A DNA stretch of 64,000 bases, from the sequence record PP496441.1; one strand, written 5' to 3'. Numbering within the stretch: the first letter of the stretch is position 1; every line of letters starts with the position of its first letter. Of the stretch, positions 3,705-50,548 are shown piece after piece. Made by a program: the position numbers and the translations under genes. Under the pieces are notes generated by a model that saw nothing but the letters and a program-made list of their open reading frames with translations, did no database searches and was not told the origin of the DNA.

Positions 3705-4133
3705 ATGGCACCGCAAAAGAAAGCCAAGCCTGCACCCAAGAAGACAGTCCCCGGTCGAGACGATGGCAAGTTCGTCGCTCGGCTAGGCGCCCTCCGTGAT
3801 CTGGTTGCCGCACGGGCCAAAGAACAAGGCGTCAGCATGAACACGTGGCTGGTCAGCGCAGTGGCTCAGGTCCTTGGCGTGGAAAAGGATGAAGATGGTA
3901 ATCAGTTGCTCCTGCCTCATCTTGGACAGACTCAGCCTCCGTTAGTACCCGGCATGACGGTACGCAACAAGAAGGCACCCTATCAGGTGTTCCAAATCAA
4001 CACGTTCTCCATCAGCCGATCCGTTGAAGCCGCGAAGCAGGTGGATCAGCGACCGTTCATCAAGGTGTACGGTATCGATCTTAAAACTGGTAAGGGCGTC
4101 TCAGCGCAGTTGAACGACGTGCAGGTGGTGTAA
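3705..4133 (+). CDS. Arc/HicB-like ribbon-helix-helix DNA-binding protein
   Basis: 'KFVARLGALRDLVAARAKEQGVSMNTWLVSAV' matches the RHH pattern; AAGGAG RBS upstream. Confidence 0.6.
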   Translation: MAPQKKAKPAPKKTVPGRDDGKFVARLGALRDLVAARAKEQGVSMNTWLVSAVAQVLGVEKDEDGNQLLLPHLGQTQPPLVPGMTVRNKKAPYQVFQINTFSISRSVEAAKQVDQRPFIKVYGIDLKTGKGVSAQLNDVQVV

Positions 4134-4134
4134 C

Positions 4135-4407
4135 ATGGGTACTCGGGCAGATGCATATCGCCAGCTCAATAAAGATATGACCAATACGTTGAACCGCCGC
4201 CAGCGTCTTGACCGAACCGTGGACATCCTGCTGCGAGCCCTTGGCGTGGACGACGATGCCGCCGACAAGATGTTGGACGAAGTACAGTCTTGTGACTTCC
4301 GGTCGATGGGGAAACTCCTGCAAGAGAAGTTCCCGGATAGCCCGGACATCGAATGGTGTCTGAAGACGCATCAAGGCTACGACACCATTCAAGTTGAGAA
4401 GTCCTAA
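4135..4407 (+). CDS. Hypothetical protein
   Basis: 90-aa ORF contiguous in the operon. Confidence 0.6.
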   Translation: MGTRADAYRQLNKDMTNTLNRRQRLDRTVDILLRALGVDDDAADKMLDEVQSCDFRSMGKLLQEKFPDSPDIEWCLKTHQGYDTIQVEKS

Positions 4408-4445
4408 TTACTGACTGATGATTCAACTCACTCAGGAAGATAGTT

Positions 4446-5126
4446 ATGACCATTGCACTCTCGAAGTTCGTTGTCACCACGCCGATGACCGCCAAGGTAG
4501 TTAAGGGTAAGAACATTGCCCTTACGGTCAAGGGTGACGATGCCTGTTCCCGTTGTGCGGAGTTCATCTCGGCCAATCCTGACGGTGAACTGGACCTGTT
4601 CGCACCCACCCATGGCGCAGCCACCGAGTCGGTACACAGAACTCGTACCGAACTGATGGAAGCAGATTACTGGGCTTTGGATTCTGCCGCCCACCACTGG
4701 TTGCGTATGGCGATGACCGTCAAGTGCGTAAACCAAGGCGGCAGGGTGGTTATCGGCCAGTGCCATGTGGAAGACAGCAACAACCCGCTGATCAAGATCT
4801 TCTGGGACAAGGAGTCCATCAAGATCGGTTTCCGTGAAAAAGAAACCGAAGAGCCGGTTACTACCACGGTATGTCGCGGTGTAGAACTAGGACAGCGGTT
4901 CACTCTGGCGCTGCACATCACCAAGGCGGGTAGCGTTTCCCTGACCGTATCCGTAGACGGCAAGAAGTACAACTTCACGGAGAAGATGGATCCAACGTGG
5001 AAAGACTTCGAGTTCAACTTCCATGCCGGCCTGTACAACCAGCTGGACTACTCGGACAAGGTCCCTACCACTGACTGCTCCCGTGCGACCATCCACACGC
5101 TGGACGTAGACCACGACGCAGCCTAA
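4446..5126 (+). CDS. Polysaccharide lyase family 7 (alginate lyase-like), no signal peptide
   Basis: PL7 motifs R(S/T)EL(R)E seen as RTELME, QIH as QCH, and YFKAGxYxQ as FHAGLYNQ, in the expected order and spacing. Confidence 0.85.
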   Translation: MTIALSKFVVTTPMTAKVVKGKNIALTVKGDDACSRCAEFISANPDGELDLFAPTHGAATESVHRTRTELMEADYWALDSAAHHWLRMAMTVKCVNQGGRVVIGQCHVEDSNNPLIKIFWDKESIKIGFREKETEEPVTTTVCRGVELGQRFTLALHITKAGSVSLTVSVDGKKYNFTEKMDPTWKDFEFNFHAGLYNQLDYSDKVPTTDCSRATIHTLDVDHDAA

Positions 5127-5224
5127 GCCCCACCAGCCGCCGCAGGCTGACTGATCCACTAGTGACTTGGACCATCGGTCCGGTTATCCGGTAGCGTTCA
5201 GCCTGCGAGCGTATACGCGCCCAC

Positions 5225-5272
5225 AAAAAAGCCCCACTCACTCGGCACTTGACCGGATGGTGGGGCTTTTTT
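5225..5272. terminator. Bidirectional intrinsic terminator between convergent genes
   Basis: AAAAAAGCCCCAC...GTGGGGCTTTTTT inverted repeat with A/T tracts on both sides. Confidence 0.85.
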
Positions 5273-5276
5273 CGTC

Positions 5277-8123
5277 TTACATGGTTACCAGAGTTACAAA
5301 CCGGTTGGACATTGCGCGAGCTGTCAGCAGAGTTGCCAGCAGTCCTGTGTCTGCCCGATACTTCAACACCACCTTGTACACTTTGCCCGGTGTCAGACCC
5401 GTCGCCACGTATTCCCAAGAGCAAGTAGCGGCAGTCGCCGAGTAGCAGCTTCTGTCGTCACTGGCCGCGAGCACAACCGTAGCACCTTCGGTCATTGTAA
5501 AACTGACCCGAGTACCTGCTGCACACTGAGCCCCGAAGGTCACCCGGATAATCCCGGACAGCCCACACGTTATCTGCGCAGTCGGCCCTACCGTGGTCAG
5601 ATCCACGAAGCCCACACTGAGAGTAGCCTCTGATGTGTTGAGCACAGCGTTGACCAGCGAGGTACTGTTCGGCGGAATGGCGTAGGTTCCATCTGCCTTG
5701 AGGAACTTGCCGGTGTCAGCAATCTTCGGAGCCGGAACCAGACCATGCTTGCCGTCGGCAGTTGCAGTAGATCCCACCATGTCGGCCAGCCCGGCCAGTA
5801 CGTTCGCCATGAAGGTGGAACTGTCCTTGACCGACATCAGGCTACGTCCGTAGTCCGTGGTCAGGAATGCCTTAACCGAACTCGCCAGCGCATCCCCCAT
5901 GAGCACAGCGTTCTCAGGAAGTGCCAACGCTGAGATGTTGCTAAGGACGGTAGCCTTGGCTTGATACCCTGACAGGTCGGGGGGTGCTACGACGGGTTGC
6001 CCACCTTCCAGTTCCACTGTGGTTACCTTGATGGCATTGTCCGGCAATGCAGGCTCCGTAACCAGCCCATTGGTTTCCGTACCTTTGCGCAGCTTGAACG
6101 TACCCGTCGTGTCCGCGTAGATCAAATCAATCCGTTGCTGACTGGTACCTGCTGCGGCAATCGTGAACGTCACCGAAGTACCGTTGATGGTGTAGGTATT
6201 TCCTTTTATCCGCCACTGGATCTGAGTGCCACTGCGCAGCGTCAGAGTCACGTTCAACCCCGTCTGTGTGACTTCCAGCGGAGTCAGCAATCCATCTGCC
6301 AGCCCAGCTTTCAACGCCAATGCCTGCGTGATAGTATCCAGTGCCTGCTGAACCGTCTTGGAGATAGGCTTGTCCGTGTCCGGCGTGTTGTCCACGTGGT
6401 CCAATCCGATGTTCGCACGCACCTGAGCTTTCTGGGCGTCAGCCAAGGTCTGGGCGTTATACCGAACCAGCTCGGTGATTCCCAGATTGGTACGTACCTG
6501 TGCACGCTGCTCCGCAGTTAACACCTGATCGGCGTCGTACCGGAGGAAGTACCCGGTCAGCAGGTCACGCAGCGACGGGCTGTCACCCAACCCCAGCATC
6601 TTCAGTCCGAAATCGCTGTAAGGTATATTGACGTTGCTACCGTCCAGCTTGAAGCCTAGGATCGTGGCGGGCGTAGTTCCCATCTTGGCGAGCGCATCCA
6701 GCACGTTACTCTTGGCTTGGAACCCCGATAGGTCCGGGGGCGTAACCATCGGTTGTGCACCTTCCACAAAAACCGAGGTGATACGAATGGTGCTATCCGG
6801 CAAGGCAGGTTCAACGGCAGTGACATTGGATTCCACGCCTTTGAGGACGTGCACAGTGCCGGTCGTATCCCCGTACAGGAGGTCGTATCGCTGCATGCCA
6901 ACGCCCGACGCGTCCAAGACAAAGGATACTGAAGGTGTAGGGGACGTGTAGGTAACTCCGTCGATCCGCCATTGCAGGTTGCTGCCGTTGTCACTCGCCA
7001 AGCCAATAAGCAGGCCATTGCTGCTGGTCGAGATTGGAGTCAGCAATCCATCCTGAAGGTCAGCCTTTCCGTCCAGCAAGGCGAGGATGTTGGACAACTG
7101 ATGCAGGACCGAGGTGGGGATCGGTTTGTCGATGTCCGCTGTGTTATCTACCTTATCCAGATGCAAGTCAGCCAGTGTTACAGCACCTGTCAGTCCATTG
7201 ATCGATGCGACGACCAGGCTGTCCTTGAGCCGGTCCCACCCTTCCCCGTTGGAGATAATCCAATCCCCAATCTGCCAGTCCTTGTTGCCGTCGATACTGG
7301 TAGATCCCGCCACCTTGACGATGTAATACAGACCCTTGTTCGCTGTGCTAGCCGCAGGCATGGCTGGCAAGTTCTTATCCGCATCCCACGTCCCCGCGTA
7401 CCGCAGGCTACCGAGAATGGATTCCGGAAGATAGGATAGGTCGATCTTACGATTGCTATCCAGTGGCACCAGCCCACCTGACTGACCCAGCAGAAGAGCG
7501 TCCAACTTGGCGTCCAAAGCCATCTGTTGCGGTAGGGATACAGGCTTCTGAGAATCGGGGATATTGCTTACGTGTTCCAGGCCCACGGCGGCGGGGGTCA
7601 GCACATCTAGCAGACGGTCGCCCCGAATGTACTGCCGGAAGGTACCCAACGGGATCAGGGAGCTGATATCTGGTGCTGTCACCTTACCCAAGTCCGCGAG
7701 GGTTCCGTCGGTGTACATCACCATCAGGTTACCCGCAGCGTTGATCATCGACGTGGAGATACCCCGTCCAGCAGACCCTTTGACCATACCCGCGTACTCT
7801 TGATCCCCGTTGGCGTAGGTGATCAGCAAGCGACCGTCAGCTGTAACTTGCGTTTTCTGCACCACCTTACCCGTGGTATCACTACCGGCATCCGAGGTGA
7901 GTTGATCCTGTGCTGTCAGGAAGGCCTCGTAGCTGGTCATCAAAGACGGACGTGAGCAGATCAACAGATTATGGTTGACCAACTTGGCGAGTTCTTTCCA
8001 GTTCTTGTCAACAACTGCTAAAGACACGTAGTACCACTCGTCTACGCGCATGCGTTTTCCATTGACCTGTACGTCTTGCTTCACATTCGGAAATTTCCGG
8101 AAGCCTACTAATACGTTATCCAT
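5277..8123 (-). CDS. Virion appendage (tail/head fibre-like) protein with a duplicated module of about 160 aa
   Basis: 'VDNT.D.DKP' fibre repeats, a 'GTWDA..N.P' module and an internal duplication; likely start ATG 8123 with AGGTG RBS. Confidence 0.7.
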   Translation of the reverse strand: MDNVLVGFRKFPNVKQDVQVNGKRMRVDEWYYVSLAVVDKNWKELAKLVNHNLLICSRPSLMTSYEAFLTAQDQLTSDAGSDTTGKVVQKTQVTADGRLLITYANGDQEYAGMVKGSAGRGISTSMINAAGNLMVMYTDGTLADLGKVTAPDISSLIPLGTFRQYIRGDRLLDVLTPAAVGLEHVSNIPDSQKPVSLPQQMALDAKLDALLLGQSGGLVPLDSNRKIDLSYLPESILGSLRYAGTWDADKNLPAMPAASTANKGLYYIVKVAGSTSIDGNKDWQIGDWIISNGEGWDRLKDSLVVASINGLTGAVTLADLHLDKVDNTADIDKPIPTSVLHQLSNILALLDGKADLQDGLLTPISTSSNGLLIGLASDNGSNLQWRIDGVTYTSPTPSVSFVLDASGVGMQRYDLLYGDTTGTVHVLKGVESNVTAVEPALPDSTIRITSVFVEGAQPMVTPPDLSGFQAKSNVLDALAKMGTTPATILGFKLDGSNVNIPYSDFGLKMLGLGDSPSLRDLLTGYFLRYDADQVLTAEQRAQVRTNLGITELVRYNAQTLADAQKAQVRANIGLDHVDNTPDTDKPISKTVQQALDTITQALALKAGLADGLLTPLEVTQTGLNVTLTLRSGTQIQWRIKGNTYTINGTSVTFTIAAAGTSQQRIDLIYADTTGTFKLRKGTETNGLVTEPALPDNAIKVTTVELEGGQPVVAPPDLSGYQAKATVLSNISALALPENAVLMGDALASSVKAFLTTDYGRSLMSVKDSSTFMANVLAGLADMVGSTATADGKHGLVPAPKIADTGKFLKADGTYAIPPNSTSLVNAVLNTSEATLSVGFVDLTTVGPTAQITCGLSGIIRVTFGAQCAAGTRVSFTMTEGATVVLAASDDRSCYSATAATCSWEYVATGLTPGKVYKVVLKYRADTGLLATLLTARAMSNRFVTLVTM

Positions 8124-8151
8124 TATACGCACCTATAACCGGATTGAAGAT

Positions 8152-8184
8152 AAAAAACGGGGAACCAGTTTAAGGGTTCCCCGT
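8152..8184 (-). terminator. Intrinsic terminator
   Basis: Minus strand ACGGGGAACC-loop-GGTTCCCCGT followed by a T tract. Confidence 0.8.
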
Positions 8185-8200
8185 GGGACTCAGATTAAGG

Positions 8201-10597
8201 TTAGATATGCTTGCGTGGAGCGAACTGGCCGATACGAACCACCGAGTCTTGAGCAACGTTCTGCGCGAAGTAAACGGTGACACGAACAGTCACCGCAGTC
8301 TCCGTGCCGTCCCACGTATAACGCTGAGTCTCCAGCGATGTCAATGGAACAACGGCTGGCAAGGTGTAAGGATCTACGTACTTGTCACCGTCTCGGAAGT
8401 AGAACACGGTCGATGCGGAGTTGACAGGTTTGGTTACCAGCACCTCAGCAGTTACTCCGAGAATACCGGACGTAGTACCGTCTACCCGAATCGCACCCAC
8501 CAGACTGAACACGTCGCCCACGGCCATGTTGGCAAGTGAGAAGGTAGTCGTCGGGGAGAACGCCAGATACGCGGCGGCTACACTAGGTGTACCCCCGAAC
8601 TGAATGACCTGGTATTCACCGGGACCGTCAGTACGTACCTCTTTGCTCCAGGTGGTAGTCAACCCGGTGAACGCCGAGCCAGCAGCCTTGAAGCCGGTCG
8701 CAACCACCGAACCTGCTGTGGGGTTGACCGAAGCCGTAGACATGTTCGAGGAACCGAGCAGCAACGGATTCGCGCCGAGAGATCCGGTCTTGTTAACCGC
8801 GCTGTAGAGGTCACCCGAGTCAACTGGCAGGTCAACTGGCAGGAACTCCAGTCTACGAACCAATGGCAGGTAGGGTTGAGCGAGCTTGAACGCACCTTGT
8901 ACGTGTGGGTGCAAGCCATCACGCAGGTCGGCTTCCACGATAGCGTCCCAGGTATTGACTACCGGAGTCCACTTCGACACCTCGTTGGTGATCCAGTTGT
9001 GCACTTCGATGTGATCTGCGAGGGCTTGGCCGGTAAGGACCTTATCACCAAAGCGAGGCGTCTCGTTACCCACGATAACGATCTTGCCAGCACGTTGCAG
9101 GCGGCGGATGATTGCCGTGATGTTACGCTTGGAATCACCTGCGGTCATTGCCGGGGCGGAAGCGGTACGGTCGTTGGTACTTCCGAGGAAGAACACGATA
9201 TCACCCACCGCAGCCGCAACTGCCTCGACACGTGCCAACATCTCAGCAGTGTTCTGGCCGCCGATACCGAAGTTCAGCGTGTAAGGCAACCGGATCACGC
9301 CGGTGAGCATGGCTACCCAGTTGTAGATACCATAGTTCTTGGTCGAGAATGCGGTGGACGATGCGGTTGCCGCTAGGCCTGTAACCGCGTGGTTCATCTC
9401 TGTACGGCTGTCACCAAAGAGGATAACTTCCCGGAGCAAAGGTCGGGACGGGAACACCAGCTTGTTCCAAGATCCATTGGATCGAGTGAACTGACCTGGA
9501 AGTGATGCACTCACATCCGAGATCAGACCGGATAGATCTGTTTTGCTTGCCAGCCCTACCAGATCTGTTCTACTCGCCAGATTAGCGATTTCGGTCTTGG
9601 TCGCAGCCCCTGACACGCCCTGACTCAGCGTACTGAGCGAGGTGGACAATCCGTTGATCGTGTTGATATCTTGAGTGCCGGTATGAGTACCCCGGTCACG
9701 CAGACTTGCATCGGTGTCGTTCTTGGTGGCTCCGACGGCAACGCCCGTGAGCTTGTCCTTGTCTGCGGTTACGTAAGCATTGGTATCAGGGTTGCTTTCG
9801 TACAGCGTCTTTACCTGGGAAGCTGTCACCGGGGTGGCGCTGCTGGAACTCAAGACCCATTTGTTGTCCGACGCGTCCCATACGTATCGGGCTACATCTG
9901 CGCCTGCAACGTCTACGTCAGCATAATTGCCTGCGACCGGCAGCGATACGCCTGCGGTGAGTGCGGACAGCGACGTGAACGTACCTCGGAACATCGGACC
10001 TTCGACACCCGCAAGCTTGGTCTTTTCCGCTGGGGTGAAGTTGGACTGGGACAGTGCATAGCCCGTCTGCTTTTCTACCTTGGTGTCCAACAAGTTCTGC
10101 AGGACGGCCCGAACGTAGGCATCGTCATAGTTGAACAGTTCGGCAAGCTTATTCTTCTGAGCCGCGTCGAAATCGTTGGTGGATAGCATCTTGCCGGGGA
10201 CTACGGCAACCGCACCGAGGTCAGCAGCCGTCTTCGGAATGTAGGGGGCATCAACCAGATCCCCGAACAACCCGGTGGTAGCCACCTTGGCGAGTCCGGG
10301 AATGTTACCCCCGCCACCGGAACCATCACCTGCCGCGACTGCCGCCGCTGTACTGGTGCTGATCGAGGGGTCCATGACCCGACGGTGGAACTCTTGAGCG
10401 TTGGAGTAGGAGAGGATCGAGTCTTCGGAGCAAACCAACAAGCCCCGTGCTACCTGAGTCCTCAACATCTCAAAGCTTTGCAGTACGAATTTTTCCGAAG
10501 GGTAGAAGAAATTACCCTCCGTCAAAGTAGTACCTTCGATGGACAGTCCCTTCGGGGCGGAGGCCGTTCGTTTGAAACCAATAGATGATGCTGCCAT
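8201..10597 (-). CDS. Virion appendage/tailspike-like protein with an SGNH/GDSL hydrolase domain
   Basis: SGNH blocks 'LFGDSRT', 'NFGIGG', 'GSTND' and 'DGLHP'; N-terminal half has fibre-like repeats. Confidence 0.8.
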   Translation of the reverse strand: MAASSIGFKRTASAPKGLSIEGTTLTEGNFFYPSEKFVLQSFEMLRTQVARGLLVCSEDSILSYSNAQEFHRRVMDPSISTSTAAAVAAGDGSGGGGNIPGLAKVATTGLFGDLVDAPYIPKTAADLGAVAVVPGKMLSTNDFDAAQKNKLAELFNYDDAYVRAVLQNLLDTKVEKQTGYALSQSNFTPAEKTKLAGVEGPMFRGTFTSLSALTAGVSLPVAGNYADVDVAGADVARYVWDASDNKWVLSSSSATPVTASQVKTLYESNPDTNAYVTADKDKLTGVAVGATKNDTDASLRDRGTHTGTQDINTINGLSTSLSTLSQGVSGAATKTEIANLASRTDLVGLASKTDLSGLISDVSASLPGQFTRSNGSWNKLVFPSRPLLREVILFGDSRTEMNHAVTGLAATASSTAFSTKNYGIYNWVAMLTGVIRLPYTLNFGIGGQNTAEMLARVEAVAAAVGDIVFFLGSTNDRTASAPAMTAGDSKRNITAIIRRLQRAGKIVIVGNETPRFGDKVLTGQALADHIEVHNWITNEVSKWTPVVNTWDAIVEADLRDGLHPHVQGAFKLAQPYLPLVRRLEFLPVDLPVDSGDLYSAVNKTGSLGANPLLLGSSNMSTASVNPTAGSVVATGFKAAGSAFTGLTTTWSKEVRTDGPGEYQVIQFGGTPSVAAAYLAFSPTTTFSLANMAVGDVFSLVGAIRVDGTTSGILGVTAEVLVTKPVNSASTVFYFRDGDKYVDPYTLPAVVPLTSLETQRYTWDGTETAVTVRVTVYFAQNVAQDSVVRIGQFAPRKHI

Positions 10598-10708
10598 AAT
10601 ACTCTCCAGTTCGGTCCTGATTACGTTGTATGTCTATACCACCTTTGATTAGGTGGGACGGAATGCCCGAAAACAGATCTGGGAAATAACGTCCTGATTC
10701 AACCTGGT

Positions 10709-10722
10709 ATGCGTGTAATTAG
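10709..10722 (-). promoter_or_regulatory. Candidate late promoter CTAATT-N4-GYAT
   Basis: CTAATTACACGCAT lies between a terminator and the SGNH gene; the same pattern occurs at 42254, 50535 and 60217. Confidence 0.5.
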
Positions 10723-10733
10723 GACTTTCAGAC

Positions 10734-10770
10734 AAATAAAAGCCCGCACGGCGGGGGCCAATGCGGGCTT
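10734..10770 (-). terminator. Intrinsic terminator
   Basis: AAGCCCGCA...TGCGGGCTT stem followed by TTATTT on the minus strand, just after the 10774 stop. Confidence 0.75.
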
Positions 10771-10773
10771 AGA

Positions 10774-11982
10774 TTATGCAGAGGGTACAGGATCCCAACT
10801 AACCTTGAATACTTTTCCGAGGTATTTGACAACCCGGCTGTAGTTCTTGGACTCGTCCATAATGCCGATCACGTAGTTGAGCACGTCACCCCGGATCTGT
10901 GACTGACTCCACGCTTGGGGTACACCTTTCATGTAGTCCTGTGCTGGACCTGGAATCCACTTGGCGCTGGCTGCGGAGTGCAACGTCAGGTTAGTAGCAC
11001 TCATCTCTGTCAGCTTGATCGCACCCAAGTCCCGGAGGACCAGCATCAAGGTGTTGATTGCCCGGTAGCTTGGCAGGTCCATATTGCGGCATACGCCTTG
11101 AACCGTGGCGAAGTCGATGAACTCATTGGGCTTGAACATTTCCGCAGGCTTAGGGTAATGATCGATAACCTTGAATGGTTCGTAGTACGGCCCCTTCTCA
11201 GTCTTAGGCGGTTCCTTTTCCATGGATCTAACCAGATCGTCGATAGCCTCCGGACACATTGAGTTCTCACGTCGCGGTTCGCTGACGATGGTTGCCAACA
11301 CCTTAGGGGCATCCCACTTGGCTGGCTCTTTAACTGACAACGGCGGCGATGGGTCAACGGCCAGCACTGGCGCTGGAACTTCCGGTTTGGCCGGGGTCAC
11401 CGGCTTCGCAGGCTGCGTTTTGGGCGGCTTTGCTGGTTTGGCCGGGGATTGTGTAGCTTTCGGCAGTTTGTTCAAGGCGGAGCGTTTCACGGGCTTGCGA
11501 GTGGCGAGCATGATGTCGAGCGTGTGCTTAGTCTCAGGACACTTGCATCCGTTCATCAGGTCCACGATGGTACTGATCGGCAGCACCATGCTCTCGGCTT
11601 GCACTTCGCCGTCAGGAATCTTGATCGGCTTGCTCTGGCCGGGCTGACGCACTATTTCGAAGTGCAGCAGGTTATCAGCCAGCCCCGGAATGTTGGCCCA
11701 GTACTCACAGACGGCTTTGATGTCATCGTGAGTTTTAGGCAGTTGAAGCAGGTGCTTACGAAGGGACGCGCCGGAATAGGTGAGCCCGCAAGACTTGAGT
11801 GCCGAAGCAATCTGCTCGAACGAGGCCCCATACGTACGCATCCTGACAATACCCGGTAATGCCTTGTCCAACAACAACTGTACTTCTTTTCTTATTTTGC
11901 GCGGTCCATCGTAGTCGTACTCTTCGGCCAGCTTTAGGAACTGGTCAAGATCAAACTGTGGTTTATCAGTTGTGTCTTTCAT
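10774..11982 (-). CDS. Hypothetical protein with a Pro/Lys-rich linker
   Basis: 402-aa ORF; possible N-terminal HTH ('ASFEQIASALKSCG'). Confidence 0.65.
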   Translation of the reverse strand: MKDTTDKPQFDLDQFLKLAEEYDYDGPRKIRKEVQLLLDKALPGIVRMRTYGASFEQIASALKSCGLTYSGASLRKHLLQLPKTHDDIKAVCEYWANIPGLADNLLHFEIVRQPGQSKPIKIPDGEVQAESMVLPISTIVDLMNGCKCPETKHTLDIMLATRKPVKRSALNKLPKATQSPAKPAKPPKTQPAKPVTPAKPEVPAPVLAVDPSPPLSVKEPAKWDAPKVLATIVSEPRRENSMCPEAIDDLVRSMEKEPPKTEKGPYYEPFKVIDHYPKPAEMFKPNEFIDFATVQGVCRNMDLPSYRAINTLMLVLRDLGAIKLTEMSATNLTLHSAASAKWIPGPAQDYMKGVPQAWSQSQIRGDVLNYVIGIMDESKNYSRVVKYLGKVFKVSWDPVPSA

Positions 11983-15074: not shown

Positions 15075-15093
15075 GGAGATTTACCTGCGTCGT

Positions 15094-15138
15094 AAATAAA
15101 AATGGGGCATCGACCAGCGAACCGGCAGATGCCCCATT
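15094..15138 (-). terminator. Intrinsic terminator
   Basis: AATGGGGCATC...GATGCCCCATT stem followed by a T tract on the minus strand. Confidence 0.8.
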
Positions 15139-15331
15139 AGGGTTGCGCAACAAGTCACCTGGACGACTTGCGACGCTTCGCTTTGACCGTACTCACCGCC
15201 TTGAAGCCGGGCTTATTGTAGTCCGGTCTGGCATCGGCGGCGAGGTTGAACAACCCCCCGCTGCTCGGGTCAAAGCCTTTGGCGGATCGGCCCTTTGGCT
15301 TACCGCCGCCGGACTTACCGCCGGCCTGCAG

Positions 15332-17322: not shown

Positions 17323-17381
17323 GGGACATCCTCTTTCGGTTAGCTTACATCCCGTATTTACAGGATCTGATTTGGGGTGGA

Positions 17382-20083: not shown

Positions 20084-21656
20084 CGCTCTGCTTCCTTCTC
20101 TTAGCAACCCGATCCCGCGCTTCCTTGGAAGCCTTCGAGCCACGTTTGGTTGAAGTACTGGATGCCTTGGTATGACCCTTCGGTGCCCCGGTCTTGGACT
20201 TCACGCCGTGCTTGACCTTGGCTACCGTGTCGGACTCGTAACGCTCCAGAATGCTGGTGATACGGTCACGTGCGTCTTCCTCGGTCATCTCCGGAACAGG
20301 AGCCCCGTTCTCGTCCAGCACCTGTGTTTCAGGAACTGCGCCGAACAACGACGAGGTCTTGCCGGGGCCAGTGGTCGGCAGCGAGTTCAGGAAGAAGGAA
20401 TACTTGTTCCGAGTCGCGTCGTAACCTACGTCCACTACGCTGTCGATCAGATCGTACAGCTTCATCGACTCACCCTTGCCGCCGCGAGTCTTCAAGTGAC
20501 CGTTTACCACCTCACGCACTTCCTTGTCGGTAGAGTTCATGATGATCTCAGTCATCGATGTCACAATCCGATTGTAGGTGTACATGTTGTGGTAGGCCAG
20601 CAGGAAGGTGGACACGTTGCCGCCAATCACGCTGAGAACGTCGGTGTACTTGATCGCGGTGCACACTGGGCAGTTGCACGGCAGATGGTTGAACGGGCTC
20701 GGGCTGTTCACCTTGTCGAACATCTTGAAGAAGCCCGGCGGGGTGCTGATGTGCTCTTGGAAGTAGTAGCCCTTGGATACCGATTCCTGCAACCACGTCG
20801 AGGCATCACTGGTGATCAGCGGGGCCAGCCCTTTCTTCGCCATGTAGATCAGTGGATAGACCAGCGAGAGCTTGGCGACACCGAGCATGTGGTACTGCTC
20901 GTATTTGCGACCGGTAACCATCTGCTGGATGATCTTGGCAATGGCGGTCATCTGGGTATCGTAATACGTACCACCCATGGCCAGACGAGTTATGTCGTCA
21001 CGCTCTACCAGTTCACGGTAGCGGCTTACTTCTTCCTGCGTGTTACCGTGGAAGATGTTCATCAGCTCCAAACTGGGACGCTTGTTCTGCATCATCAGTT
21101 CGGTGTTCGCAGCCTGCACTCGACCCAAGCGCTGATACAACTCTGGATCGTTGAAGTGCATCGGGATATCGAGCACGATACCGATGTCTGCATTGTTGTT
21201 GTACCACTGGATGATCTCCATCGGGTCTAGGTAGTCGAGACGACCCATACCGAGCTGGAAACCTCCGGAGTCCGCGACGATGTGTCTAGACTTGTCAGCG
21301 AATGCAGTCACGTCACCTTTACGAGTGTTGTGAGAGATACTATCTTTGTTGATGTGCTGGGTGTAGTTGACCATGTACTGGCTGACGCCCATGTCTCGCG
21401 CCGTCAGATCGTCAAACGCACTCATGTGATACATCTCGTCGAACGACCCATCTGCCCAGCGCGTGGACACAGCATGGTGGGTATTGGACACGATGAACAG
21501 GTCACGGTCGGGACACTTGAGGAAGATGTGGTTTCCGCCGATTTCCACTAAGTCGATCTTGTTGGGGTTCTTGGCGTAACGGACGTATACCGAAATGCCT
21601 CCATGCGCGGGGTAGAACACTCCAGCAGGCACCAGTTTGAATTGACCAGGCGTCAC
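20055..21656 (-). CDS. tRNA-guanine transglycosylase (TGT)/DpdA-like base-exchange enzyme
   Basis: 'ADSGGFQ', 'VLDIP', 'FHG', 'AMGG', 'HMLG', 'SDASTW', and Zn site 'CNCPVC...HN'; basic C-terminal tail. Confidence 0.85.
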   Translation of the reverse strand: MTPGQFKLVPAGVFYPAHGGISVYVRYAKNPNKIDLVEIGGNHIFLKCPDRDLFIVSNTHHAVSTRWADGSFDEMYHMSAFDDLTARDMGVSQYMVNYTQHINKDSISHNTRKGDVTAFADKSRHIVADSGGFQLGMGRLDYLDPMEIIQWYNNNADIGIVLDIPMHFNDPELYQRLGRVQAANTELMMQNKRPSLELMNIFHGNTQEEVSRYRELVERDDITRLAMGGTYYDTQMTAIAKIIQQMVTGRKYEQYHMLGVAKLSLVYPLIYMAKKGLAPLITSDASTWLQESVSKGYYFQEHISTPPGFFKMFDKVNSPSPFNHLPCNCPVCTAIKYTDVLSVIGGNVSTFLLAYHNMYTYNRIVTSMTEIIMNSTDKEVREVVNGHLKTRGGKGESMKLYDLIDSVVDVGYDATRNKYSFFLNSLPTTGPGKTSSLFGAVPETQVLDENGAPVPEMTEEDARDRITSILERYESDTVAKVKHGVKSKTGAPKGHTKASSTSTKRGSKASKEARDRVAKRRKQSDGERSKAKK

Positions 21657-21680
21657 TGCGCGTACTCCTATGTAAGGGTT

Positions 21681-21715
21681 AAAAACCCGCGTCCCAGTTT
21701 CCCAGAACGCGGGTT
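21681..21715 (-). terminator. Intrinsic terminator
   Basis: AACCCGCGT...ACGCGGGTT stem followed by a T tract on the minus strand. Confidence 0.75.
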
Positions 21716-21749
21716 GGTTACACGCTATTTACAGGCGTGTTGGCCCTAC

Positions 21750-26276: not shown

Positions 26277-26339
26277 GGGGTACTCTTTTAGGTCGGGTAA
26301 ATGTTCGATAATTATGGGCTATTTACCGAGGTAATGGCA

Positions 26340-27458: not shown

Positions 27459-28459
27459 AACGTAGTTCATGGGGTGCCATCTTTCGCTACACGTGGGCGG
27501 ACATGTTCAAGGGCATGGGGCCAGATTGGGCTCGTACGTGGAAAGACATACACGGGAGTATATACGGACCCAATACGCCACTTACGTGGGTTCTTAAGGC
27601 GATCATCACGGTGATGATCATCTTAGTGTCCATGGTGGTGTTCGTTATCCCCTTGATGATCACCGTATTCTTTGGTAACCTTTGGGAGAACTACAGACGG
27701 TTCCGGACTCCAGACATGCACTATGCTGCCGGTCGCCGTACGAGAAGAAAGCTTGATCTCCTCCTTCGTGCGTATAACGTCTTAGATGTAGATAGGCAGA
27801 AAGGAACTCGGCCAATGATACGAGACGTATCCTTCGATCCTTTCTGGGGTGACTTCATTCGTCGCTGGATCTCAGTAGCCTCCGATAAACGTGTGAGTTA
27901 CGACCATATCCCCAAACCGGATGCGTCCGGGGTCATTCCAGCTGTGCGCCCGCTTGTGCATAACGCTGCAGGCGGGGCTTCCGACATTCCGGTGTCCCAA
28001 CGTACCGTTCCACGCATATCGAAGCGCCTGCGTCGTCCTGTGAAGCTCGTTCCCGTGTCCGTGAATGTCACGACGGTGGGAGGTGAGAGTTGTCCGATTG
28101 GGCACAACTGGACAATCACGGAAGAGATTGTTGCAGGTAGGGTGTCGCCGGGTGTCGAAGTCAAGATCGGCCGCATGTACAGGGAACCCGAGGGAGAGGA
28201 AGTCAAAACTGCACAAGTCCCTTTCAAAGCCGGGGAGACGTGGATTGATCCTAGATCAATTCCGCGAGCTTACTCTATGTCAGCTGTGGGAGGTAGTGGT
28301 AGAGGTATAGTTAACGGAACCCCTTTGGATTCTCAATCCCGACCCAGCTATTATATCGGAGGTGGCCGCTGGACTTACGACTATGCGGAAGCGATCCGGT
28401 TCAAGCTGTTCTTTGAGGAACTGGTAAAAGATTTGGTTAATGTAATAATTGAGCAATAA
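27455..28459 (+). CDS. Hypothetical membrane-anchored protein
   Basis: Hydrophobic segment 'AIITVMIILVSMVVFVIPLMITVFFG'; ATGA overlap with primase. Confidence 0.6.
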   Translation: MKRSSWGAIFRYTWADMFKGMGPDWARTWKDIHGSIYGPNTPLTWVLKAIITVMIILVSMVVFVIPLMITVFFGNLWENYRRFRTPDMHYAAGRRTRRKLDLLLRAYNVLDVDRQKGTRPMIRDVSFDPFWGDFIRRWISVASDKRVSYDHIPKPDASGVIPAVRPLVHNAAGGASDIPVSQRTVPRISKRLRRPVKLVPVSVNVTTVGGESCPIGHNWTITEEIVAGRVSPGVEVKIGRMYREPEGEEVKTAQVPFKAGETWIDPRSIPRAYSMSAVGGSGRGIVNGTPLDSQSRPSYYIGGGRWTYDYAEAIRFKLFFEELVKDLVNVIIEQ

Positions 28460-28522
28460 GAAATAAAAACCCCCAAGCAATCTCGGACATAGCGCCGGGG
28501 GCTTGGGGGTTTTTATTTCTTA
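28457..28522. terminator. Bidirectional terminator with perfect 22-bp arms
   Basis: TAAGAAATAAAAACCCCCAAGC-N22-GCTTGGGGGTTTTTATTTCTTA between convergent genes. Confidence 0.88.
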
Positions 28523-42253: not shown

Positions 42254-42267
42254 ATGCCCATAATTAG
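42254..42267 (-). promoter_or_regulatory. Candidate late promoter CTAATT-N4-GYAT
   Basis: CTAATTATGGGCAT about 40 nt upstream of ATG 42212. Confidence 0.5.
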
Positions 42268-50534: not shown

Positions 50535-50548
50535 ATACACGTAATTAG
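50535..50548 (-). promoter_or_regulatory. Candidate late promoter CTAATT-N4-GYAT
   Basis: CTAATTACGTGTAT lies between a terminator and the start of the tail gene cluster. Confidence 0.5.

Follow-up and report, generated by a model that had tools for sequence, protein, structure and literature searches.

The Pseudomonas putida jumbo phage vB_PpuM-Pori-4 carries a putative surface-polysaccharide attack locus in which a PL7 lyase and an SGNH-esterase tail fibre may act jointly on alginate, a reading to which we give even weight; the gene identities at the locus are assigned with high confidence. The analysis covers one stretch of 64,000 nucleotides (the window; bases 62001-126000 of PP496441.1, matched at 100% identity) of a 202.6-kb genome, and the P. 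putida host is a soil bacterium rather than mucoid P. aeruginosa. The original prediction described a lyase gene on the plus strand facing two tail-fibre genes on the minus strand across a shared terminator, the whole bounded by an identical 13-nt element. The convergent layout, the gene identities and the terminator stand (Table 1), the pairing of the two enzymes gains support, and the 13-mer as a cassette boundary falls.

Table 1. Features of the Pori-4 lyase-esterase locus and further instances of the upstream motif, in window coordinates
Feature	Position	Strand	Remarks
Small ORF Pori4_00090, 90 aa	4135-4407	+
13-mer copy 1, candidate promoter element	4399-4411	+	core CTAATTAC at 4404-4411, 34 nt before lyase ATG
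Predicted PL7 alginate lyase, 226 aa	4446-5126	+	PF08787; catalytic domain only
Bidirectional intrinsic terminator	5225-5272	both	A6-stem-loop-T6; common to lyase and 948-aa fibre genes
Tail-fibre protein, 948 aa	5277-8123	-	PHROG minor-tail and tail-fibre matches
Terminator-like hairpin	8157-8184	-	between SGNH fibre and 948-aa fibre genes; -18.7 kcal/mol, z -3.85
Predicted SGNH-esterase tail fibre, 798 aa	8201-10597	-	PF13472, phrog_6102
N-terminal attachment region and shaft of 798-aa fibre			aa 1 to about 380
SGNH domain of 798-aa fibre	8888-9445		aa about 385-570
Conserved C-terminal beta-sandwich of 798-aa fibre	8204-8845		aa about 585-798
13-mer copy 2, candidate promoter element	10715-10727	-	core CTAATTAC at 10715-10722, 117 nt before SGNH ATG, directly after terminator
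Intrinsic terminator of gene 10774-11982	10740-10770	-	-22.1 kcal/mol, z -4.46; 13-mer copy 2 immediately after
Gene before SGNH fibre gene	10774-11982		terminator at 10740-10770
Motif instance CTAATTAA	24541-24548	-	upstream of Pori4_00109
Motif instance CTAATTAT	42260-42267	-	48 nt upstream of Pori4_00128, baseplate region; conserved in Peetri
Motif instance CTAATTAC	50541-50548	-	after terminator, upstream of Pori4_00134; kept in Peetri, flanks changed

The lyase and the two fibres

The lyase ORF matches PF08787 (Alginate_lyase2) at 3.6e-38 and is assigned to phrog_31475 (5e-57). Its motifs RTEL (R67), QCH (Q105, H107) and FHAGLYNQ (Y197) consist of residues that are invariant across our alignment (A5), and the catalytic motifs align with those of PA1167 of P. 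aeruginosa (PDB 1vav), although this best match among PDB entries is weak (3.5e-12) and alginate activity is predicted from sequence. PA1167 and A1-II' of Sphingomonas (PDB 2cws) belong to the same Pfam family, are of similar size and, like the Pori-4 protein, consist of a single beta-jelly-roll catalytic domain with aligning RxEL, QxH and AGxYxQ motifs. Unlike these two, the Pori-4 lyase is phage-encoded, carries the QCH and FHAG motif variants and sits in the small branch phrog_31475. We found neither a virion-attachment domain nor an obvious signal peptide in the 226-aa protein, from which we infer that it is probably a soluble protein freed at lysis; the ORF is a bare catalytic domain, which makes the soluble lyase of the original prediction plausible. 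The GenBank label of this gene is "hypothetical protein".

Between the convergent lyase and 948-aa fibre genes, a hairpin with an A-run on its 5' side, a T-run on its 3' side and 13-nt inverted arms reaches -27.2 kcal/mol on one strand and -30.4 kcal/mol on the other (z -4.5 and -4.4), as expected of a shared bidirectional terminator. No recognisable enzyme domain was found in the 948-aa fibre, which contains an internal duplication of about 252 aa, with a 17-nt direct repeat in its gene at 6280 and 7036. Residues 6-63 at its N-terminus resemble the N-terminus of the SGNH fibre (BLASTP E 2e-4), a weak similarity pointing to an attachment region common to the two fibres.

The 798-aa protein is predicted to be a fibre that ends in an intact SGNH esterase and a beta-sandwich, together forming the phrog_6102 module. 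PF13472 (GDSL_2) matches aa 394-568 (5.7e-14) and phrog_6102 matches aa 385-796 (9.6e-87). All four SGNH blocks are present, namely GDS (395-397), the Gly block, GSTND (N475) and DGLH (D560/H563), and all are invariant within the family of the fibre. The esterase module could be modelled with low confidence only (pLDDT 53.7), and Foldseek searches with this model returned GDSL hydrolases and CBM-like sandwiches. In GenBank the protein is labelled "lipase".

Attachment of this SGNH protein to the virion, as originally proposed, fits its fibre architecture and an N-terminus common to two other appendage proteins. One is the 948-aa fibre; the other, Pori4_00227 (E 6.5e-10), is a second, different SGNH fibre located 116 kb away. 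Moreover, a homologue of the esterase module, gp053 of phage phiPsa374, is a virion protein by LC-MS/MS (PMC9796965). It shares 34% identity with the Pori-4 SGNH and C-terminal module over aa 385-793, and its gene adjoins a tail-fibre gene. Unlike the Pori-4 fibre, gp053 and the other phrog_6102 proteins of P. syringae phages, annotated "lipase" or "SGNH hydrolase", are about 400-450 aa long, lack the long N-terminal shaft and have no lyase nearby.

The tailspikes of E. coli phage G7C (gp63.1) and of Pectobacterium phages PP99, Q19 and PP47 likewise join a virion-attachment part at the N-terminus to an SGNH esterase. As with these tailspikes, the surface polysaccharide would be modified rather than cut, and the catalytic blocks of the Pori-4 protein are intact. 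Neither gp63.1 nor any solved SGNH tailspike, however, showed a detectable sequence relation to the Pori-4 fibre, whose C-terminal beta-sandwich is different. O-antigen is the substrate of the G7C/PP99-type tailspikes, none of which has a lyase for that polymer as a partner.

Pairing in other phages and the likely polysaccharide

When co-occurrence was checked in other phages, members of phrog_31475 and phrog_6102 were found less than 2 kb apart in three further lineages, represented by AH02 and by two uncultured contigs. The two genes are adjacent in AH02, just before the holin gene, and the esterase there has no fibre part; in L020/L021 the lyase lies 1.8 kb from the esterase, and in L027 the next gene after the lyase encodes a fibre that bears the phrog_6102 module. 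Identity among the linked esterases is only 26-43%, so the linkage spans deep divergence; were the genes placed at random, such distances would have a combined probability of roughly 0.005. Because the two families are neighbours in at least three other lineages, they probably serve one substrate. Accessory surface-active genes tend to cluster anyway, however, and adjacency therefore overstates coupling. No SGNH gene lies near the lyase in Psa21, in L026 or in a contig of a Cygsa01-like T4-type phage; in phiK7A1 the two genes are 40 kb apart, and most phages bearing phrog_6102 have no lyase nearby. On balance, functional coupling of the lyase and the esterase is for us an evenly poised proposition.

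We tentatively name alginate as the esterase substrate, at slightly below even confidence. Acetylation of alginate blocks most lyases, and the esterase fibre would remove O-acetyl groups from the mannuronate of Pseudomonas alginate, so that the lyase could cut. The N-module of PsmE from P. syringae, a predicted SGNH hydrolase and the sole reported alginate deacetylase, likewise removes alginate O-acetyl groups so that a second activity can act (PMC4444821). It differs from the Pori-4 esterase in being bacterial, in being fused to an epimerase instead of having a lyase beside it, and in serving alginate maturation rather than attack.

Less probably, the two proteins are independent tools: the SGNH fibre would be a receptor-binding protein with deacetylase activity on the O-antigen of LPS or on some other glycan that varies between strains, the lyase would separately handle alginate, and their proximity would reflect the phage habit of pooling fibres and enzymes directed at the host surface in a single variable locus. 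To our knowledge, all characterised phage SGNH tailspikes deacetylate O-antigen or capsule and none alginate; G7C gp63.1 and PP99 are precedents for action on O-polysaccharide. The G3 phages are unsuccessful on mutants in wbpL and wbpM, and O-antigen is therefore an essential receptor; the laboratory P. putida that they infect is not expected to be mucoid. Dependence on LPS also holds for phiPsa374, with its homologous virion SGNH protein. Between Peetri and Pori-4 the lyase is 85% identical and aa 1-345 of the SGNH fibre are conserved, whereas the C-terminal module is only about 24% identical; among the G3 phages, Peetri alone lyses P. syringae B728a as well. The second SGNH fibre of Pori-4, far from the lyase, and the many phages with phrog_6102 and no lyase fit separate roles as well. 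Against this stand the recurrence of the same family pair less than 2 kb apart in three more lineages and the AH02 esterase, which has no fibre part and sits beside the lyase ahead of the lysis genes. In addition, the phrog_6102 module, almost confined to Pseudomonas phages, keeps 52-56% identity from phages of P. putida to those of P. syringae pv. actinidiae, two hosts whose O-antigens are expected to differ.

It is quite unlikely that the PL7 protein cleaves some other uronic-acid polymer of the host, for example a glucuronan-like or other exopolysaccharide. PL7 does include a few lyases of non-alginate substrates, the YFKAG motif has His where Lys is usual, and the PL7 branch to which the protein belongs is small and isolated: among 1.84 billion representatives searched, 214 clusters match at E<=1e-3 and only 5 at E<=1e-30. 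Its closest solved relatives, however, are alginate lyases with all catalytic residues aligned, one bacterial-looking relative adjoins the gene of an AlgE-type mannuronan epimerase, and the known phage hosts are all pseudomonads of alginate-making species.

A short motif upstream of lyase, esterase and virion genes

The 13-mer AAGTCCTAATTAC does occur exactly upstream of both the lyase and the SGNH gene, in inverted orientation. An exact 13-nt repeat is not unusual in this window, which contains 161 maximal exact repeats of at least 13 nt and in which chance alone would give about 43 inverted 13-mer pairs. Copy 1 is partly coding: positions 4399-4407 form the last two codons and the stop (AAG TCC TAA) of the preceding small ORF. 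Amme-1 and Peetri have an extra 309-bp gene with the same ending, GTTGAGAAGTCCTAA; Lauda and Aura have AGATCCTAATTAC at the site of copy 1, and Peetri has ACCACCTAATTAC at the site of copy 2. Across relatives the invariant part of the 13-mer is CCTAATTAC only.

It is the 8-nt core and where it is placed, not the 13-nt identity, that go beyond chance. Exact CTAATTAC occurs eight times in the first 200 kb of the genome, and five of these sites are intergenic, at most 150 nt upstream of a start codon and in gene orientation (binomial P about 1e-6). The 7-mer CTAATTA is among the most enriched in oriented upstream regions (21-fold), with 9 of its 13 occurrences upstream of nine different genes, 33-118 nt away and always gene-oriented. 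These sites have the form CTAATTA(C/T/A), and four of the nine directly follow a terminator. Besides the lyase and the esterase fibre, seven other genes carry the motif, including several head, baseplate and fibre genes. CTAATTA is kept at orthologous Peetri sites where the flanks differ, a YAT trinucleotide lies 3-4 nt downstream at most sites, and no conserved -35 element accompanies them.

We interpret CTAATTA as probably a regulatory or promoter element, and most likely as a promoter element common to head, baseplate and fibre genes. It may be a -10-type element, perhaps read with the phage sigma factor that Pori-4 encodes. T4 gp55 is a region-2-only phage sigma factor whose late promoters (TATAAATA) have no -35 element. 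Like these, the Pori-4 motif is short, A+T-rich, orientation-specific, without a -35 partner and upstream of virion genes, and both phages encode their own sigma factor. Unlike the T4 late promoter, the Pori-4 motif reads CTAATTAY and marks only nine sites; many structural genes, that of the major capsid protein among them, have no motif, and some have sigma70-like promoters instead.

An improbable alternative is that CTAATTA is no promoter but is bound by a transcription factor of the phage, or acts as a signal at the RNA level, such as a processing site. The palindromic TAATTA core, the variable distance to the start codon and the restriction to a subset of structural operons, with sigma70-like promoters at some structural genes, are compatible with such a role. 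The strict orientation relative to the gene, the four sites immediately behind terminators, the downstream YAT and the missing -35 partner, as in promoters of region-2-only sigma factors, argue instead for a promoter.

There is only a very slight chance that the 13-mers are the ends of a discrete cassette, whether as a pair-specific operator, read by a dedicated regulator, or as recombination or mobility sites: the copies are exactly identical, inverted on both sides of the block and the sole non-hairpin repeat of at least 13 nt in the window with both copies outside our greedy ORF model, and an Arc-like ORF lies two genes upstream, but the core stands before seven other genes and always oriented with its gene, relatives differ in the five flanking bases (at copy 1 in Lauda and Aura, at copy 2 in Peetri), copy 1 includes nine coding bases, four extra shared nucleotides are expected by our own reckoning about once in seven among nine sites (36 pairs), the lyase elsewhere moves alone or with a homing endonuclease and not as this block, and target-site duplications and recombinase genes are absent. 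This reading is already largely refuted, and the 13-mer was rejected as a bounding inverted repeat or pair-specific signal, its core being present genome-wide at nine genes and its flank identity not being kept in relatives.

For the promoter reading, the 4-5 additional identical bases of the two 13-mers would be coincidence. The co-regulation of lyase and esterase that the original prediction put forward holds loosely, through membership of a common motif class, and not as control specific to the pair. Under the promoter reading, several head, baseplate and fibre genes of the phage would share one expression class with the lyase and the esterase fibre.

Enzymes and fibres of the Pori-4 locus

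The window is 100% identical to bases 62001-126000 of PP496441.1, Pseudomonas putida phage vB_PpuM-Pori-4 (Pori-4). Pori-4 is a 202.6-kb jumbo myovirus placed in the G3 genus cluster of the CEPEST collection, and its isolation host is P. putida PaW85/KT2440 without prophages and toxin-antitoxin loci (bioRxiv 10.1101/2024.03.26.586772). Mucoid P. aeruginosa biofilm, the setting implied in the original prediction, is not borne out, the host being an environmental P. putida. The lyase-fibre block is present in eight close relatives (95-97% identity) and in the more distant Peetri (84%), the sole G3 phage for which lysis of P. syringae B728a is reported (bioRxiv 10.1101/2024.03.26.586772).

The product of gene 00091, labeled 'hypothetical protein' in GenBank, matches PF08787 with 132 bits against a curated cutoff of 29.7, covering profile positions 2-225 of 225. 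Its catalytic motifs (R67-T-E-L, Q105-C-H107, and Y197 in FHAGLYNQ) can be aligned to those of PA1167, which together with A1-II' is its nearest solved relative, both being alginate lyases. RTEL, QCH, and AGLYNQ are invariant among close relatives in our lyase alignment (A5). By profile match and complete catalytic motifs, we assign this product to the PL7 alginate lyases, consistent with the plus-strand lyase predicted here. It belongs to a small PL7 branch, phrog_31475. A word-based search gave only three clusters of homologues; a full HMMER scan of 1.84 billion representatives yielded the larger set, still only 214 clusters at E 1e-3. A peptide-pattern search of IMG/VR for the lyase found nothing, and profile searches of genome contigs with A5 and with the esterase alignment (A4) found no relative in either case.

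Two minus-strand appendage genes with PHROG tail matches face the lyase in the convergent layout anticipated. The 798-aa fibre, labeled 'lipase' in GenBank, matches PF13472 with 53.4 bits (curated cutoff, 32.9), and its SGNH blocks (GDS 395-397, FGIGG, GSTND with N475, and DGLH with D560 and H563) do not vary among 10 family members. Since the Ser, Gly, Asn, and Asp/His blocks are all intact, the forecast of an intact SGNH hydrolase in one appendage gene holds. The C-terminal half (aa 385-796) is phrog_6102, a module nearly confined to Pseudomonas phages, chiefly those of P. syringae. The phrog_6102 member gp053 of phiPsa374 is an abundant virion protein (PMC9796965), and phiPsa374 infection is LPS-dependent. 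Foldseek matches of a low-confidence model of the module (mean pLDDT 53.7) give no more than hints: GDSL acylhydrolases for the first domain, at a target-normalized TM of ~0.6, and carbohydrate-binding-module-like sandwiches for the second. A PDB sequence search with the fibre protein returned no match, including no detected homology to G7C gp63.1, and the family profile gave only generic SGNH matches.

The esterase fibre has PHROG fibre matches, and its N-terminus directly matches no known adaptor domain. This N-terminus is weakly similar to that of the 948-aa fibre (aa 6-63, E 2e-4), and the first 113 aa of the esterase fibre match the start of Pori4_00227 (E 6.5e-10), annotated 'hypothetical protein', which has a GDSL_2 domain at aa 346-524 (4.3e-12). 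This N-terminal part thus occurs in three Pori-4 proteins, of which two are SGNH esterases from different families. Peetri has no 00227 gene at that position. The first 345 aa of its esterase fibre are ~90% identical to those of Pori-4; its C-terminal esterase module is of the same family but only distantly related (~24% identity), and its lyase is 85% identical. A segment of ~252 aa is tandemly duplicated inside the 948-aa fibre, with repeated blocks running from VDNT.D.DKPI to PPDLSG(F/Y)QAK, and a DNA repeat lies inside the gene for this fibre (6280-6296 / 7036-7052).

Features of the Pori-4 locus and of compared sequences (window coordinates unless a record or L-number, our handle for a compared sequence, is given)
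Feature	Coordinates	Strand	Notes
PL7 alginate lyase (00091)	4446-5126	+	PF08787 full-length domain, 3.6e-38
Tail fibre, 948 aa	5277-8123	-	Tail-fibre and minor-tail PHROG matches; without enzyme domain
SGNH-esterase tail fibre, 798 aa (00093)	8201-10597	-	GDSL_2 PF13472
Second SGNH esterase appendage, 544 aa (Pori4_00227)	PP496441.1 188647-190281 = L010:38647-40281		Outside the window, 116 kb away
GGTAAATR site	17355-17362	-	Many more elsewhere in the genome
GGTAAATR site	21726-21733	-
GGTAAATR site	26296-26303	+
GGTAAATR site	26320-26327	-
Lyase locus of Cygsa01-like T4-type contig (ENA k141_53280, 161.5 kb)	L011:10001-11511		70%-identical lyase alone, opposite strand
Lyase relative with its two neighbours in a bacterial-looking sequence	L025:4134-8991		40% identical; beside AlgE-type epimerase

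A G+C-rich A6-hairpin-T6 element with a strong fold on both strands separates the convergent lyase and 948-aa fibre genes, bearing out the bidirectional terminator proposed for them. Terminator-like hairpins also lie between the two fibre genes and ahead of the second 13-mer copy. Elsewhere in the window (28457-28522), convergent genes close to the primase region are separated by a perfect 22-nt inverted repeat, TAAGAAATAAAAACCCCCAAGC, which makes a further bidirectional terminator. The 'intergenic' stretches 21426-21749 (324 nt) and 15075-15331 (257 nt) are unlike spacer DNA; small ORFs missed by the annotation may lie in them.

Upstream motifs

The 13-mer AAGTCCTAATTAC occurs exactly as described, at 4399-4411 (+) and 10715-10727 (-). 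The window contains 161 maximal exact repeats of at least 13 nt, and ~43 inverted 13-mer pairs are expected from simulations with matched composition, so that an exact repeat of this length carries little weight by itself. In copy 1, bases 4399-4407 supply the final two codons and the stop codon of an ORF at 4135-4407. Amme-1 and Peetri have an additional 309-bp gene, distinct from this ORF, whose end is likewise GTTGAGAAGTCCTAA. In both phages it follows the 00090 orthologue and precedes the lyase, and alignment length indicates it in Voja-6 and KoPa-5 too; it is precisely absent from Pori-4, Lauda, SKa-4, and Aura. Comparison of window 4390-4411 with L003:1590-1925 and L002:2690-3020 suggests that it was lost from Pori-4 at a GTTGAGA microhomology; since the junction lies inside this microhomology, the upstream Pori-4 ORF would end with the lost gene's final codons. 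Lauda and Aura have AGATCCTAATTAC at copy 1 and Peetri has ACCACCTAATTAC at copy 2, which leaves CCTAATTAC as the only core invariant at both sites across relatives.

CTAATTA is among the top-enriched 7-mers of oriented upstream regions in the first 200 kb of Pori-4 (21-fold). Of its 13 occurrences, nine are found 33-118 nt ahead of a start codon and point the same way as the gene, which is unlikely by chance. They precede 00003 (between terminase and portal), 00009 (head module), 00091 (lyase), 00093 (esterase fibre), 00109 and 00134 (hypothetical proteins), 00128 (baseplate region), 00155 (Holliday junction resolvase), and 00227 (second SGNH fibre), the last as CTAATTAT 36 nt before the start codon. 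Four of the nine are directly 3' of an intrinsic terminator, and most have a YAT trinucleotide 3-4 nt downstream; no conserved -35 partner was found among the nine. Orthologous sites in Peetri retain the motif despite altered flanks or a different downstream gene, and among the Pori-4 genes is one for a sigma factor that matches region 2. CTAATTA is thus a recurrent, orientation-specific upstream motif kept in relatives, as a promoter element would be, and these properties point to a regulatory element, most likely of the promoter -10 type. It is absent at the major capsid gene and other structural genes, some of which have good sigma70-like promoters instead, and is not the sole signal for structural genes.

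Both 13-mers are instances of this motif, and their extra 4-5 matching bases are coincidental: by our reckoning, 36 site pairs would give one such extension about one time in seven. The proposal that the 13-mer bounds a cassette or acts as a signal specific to the pair fails, because the core stands before seven other genes and the flanks vary in relatives. A mobile cassette bounded by inverted repeats was rejected on the same grounds and for want of a recombinase. A sigma70 promoter at copy 1 (TTGAGA-17-GATGAT, 9/12 matches) was rejected because copy 2 shows nothing equivalent.

GGTAAATR forms a second class of upstream motif: 15 of the 35 occurrences of GGTAAAT fall in oriented upstream regions, and the genes that follow act mainly in replication and nucleotide metabolism. 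Some copies lie inside the spacer of TTGACA-N17-CATACT sigma70-like promoters (record 60232+ and 153417-). Together, CTAATTAY and GGTAAATR give an initial map of candidate regulatory signals in a new genus of P. putida jumbo phages.

Lyase-esterase linkage across lineages

The expectation that the two genes co-occur in other phages stands in part: they are linked in four lineages, and linkage is not universal. In the nine G3 phages, the lyase is convergent with the fibres, and the esterase gene is ~3 kb away. In AH02 (P. koreensis, 39 kb), the lyase is followed immediately by a phrog_6102 protein of 433 aa, full-length and lacking any fibre part, and the holin comes just after the pair. Three uncultured sequences of ~37 kb (L020/L021/L022) carry the lyase, four small genes, and a 421-aa phrog_6102 protein (1.4e-100), with 1.8 kb between the two. 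In another uncultured sequence, L027, a 600-aa protein combining a fibre shaft with phrog_6102 (2.9e-75) directly follows the lyase, with further fibre genes and a second SGNH protein downstream. Megablast retrieved no cultured relatives for L020 or L027, whose GC content (56-57%) is compatible with Pseudomonas phages.

Other lyase loci are arranged differently. In phiK7A1, both genes are present 40 kb apart; in Psa21, the lyase lies among tRNA genes; and in the sequences L026 and L028, there is no SGNH gene within 8 kb of the lyase. The k141_53280 lyase lies between neck genes and gp23 (capsid) and is followed by a homing endonuclease (phrog_655), which suggests possible endonuclease-assisted spread of the lyase gene; this phage is 82% DNA-identical to P. 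syringae phage Cygsa01, which has an SGNH gene and lacks the lyase. Three IMG/VR loci viewed from the esterase side showed no lyase within 10 kb. The idea that the genes are unlinked outside the genus, drawn from Psa21, phiK7A1, and the T4-like contig, was dropped given the linkage in AH02, L020, and L027.

Lyase-linked esterases are mutually only 26-43% identical, so the association is old or repeatedly formed. A crude combination of distances in four complete or long genomes gives P ~0.005 under random placement, a value that overstates the linkage because it ignores the tendency of surface-active accessory genes to cluster. In L025, the lyase relative is flanked by an AlgE-type epimerase-like protein (beta-helix and RTX repeats) and an alpha/beta-hydrolase, and these may form another alginate-modifying trio; this context agrees with the predicted beta-elimination activity of the lyase on alginate. 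Small Arc/HicB-like DNA-binding ORFs occur just upstream of the lyase at window 3705-4133 (+), L026:7336-7512, and L028:1508-1684. A conserved module of Arc-like ORF, small ORF, and lyase was rejected, as the Pori-4 ORF has no BLAST-level homology to those of the unrelated L026 and L028; the resemblance may be coincidence.

Proposed function of the enzyme pair

Acetylation is the main reason that bacterial alginate resists most lyases, and the sole reported alginate deacetylase, the N-module of PsmE, is a predicted SGNH enzyme (PMC4444821). Both points make lyase-esterase cooperation on acetylated alginate reasonable. In the reading that we rank first, the phrog_6102 esterase would deacetylate alginate, taking O-2/O-3 acetyl groups off its mannuronate residues, and the phrog_31475 lyase would then cut the polymer. 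That the two form a conserved, hitherto unrecognized Pseudomonas-phage module against O-acetylated alginate, with the de-O-acetylase either free or built into a fibre, is a tentative proposal to which we give somewhat less than even probability. Comparative linkage partly supports the two-enzyme hypothesis, and its recurrence is indirect backing for phrog_6102 as a putative alginate de-O-acetylase. The lyase often has an esterase nearby and the reverse is rare, which fits a lyase that benefits from deacetylation; the same asymmetry also fits an esterase family that is simply commoner.

If the esterase instead acts on O-antigen, the locus would be a host-range region of the ordinary kind, with several fibres and a lyase as accessory. 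Mutants in wbpL and wbpM resist the phages of the CEPEST collection, four named species excepted (bioRxiv 10.1101/2024.03.26.586772); G3 phages therefore require LPS O-antigen, the essential receptor of Pori-4. Characterized phage SGNH tailspikes act on O-antigen, Pori-4 has its second esterase fibre elsewhere in the genome, and most phrog_6102 carriers are without the lyase. A literature search on P. putida O-antigen structure and acetylation was unproductive.

Phage depolymerases, phage SGNH deacetylases, and esterase-plus-lyase synergy are known precedents for the two-enzyme idea, and our literature search found no paper on a phage alginate deacetylase. If the alginate reading is true, phrog_6102 would provide the first such phage enzyme and the second of any origin after the PsmE N-module. 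Alginate acetylation is a practical obstacle for lyases against Pseudomonas biofilms, and phrog_6102 deacetylases paired with the lyase would be a ready-made natural enzyme pair for the acetylated polymer. Combining an esterase with a backbone-cleaving enzyme is a logic known in plant cell-wall degradation, of which these phages would offer an example. A widespread Pseudomonas-phage 'lipase' family, found in dozens of genomes, would thereby gain a function.
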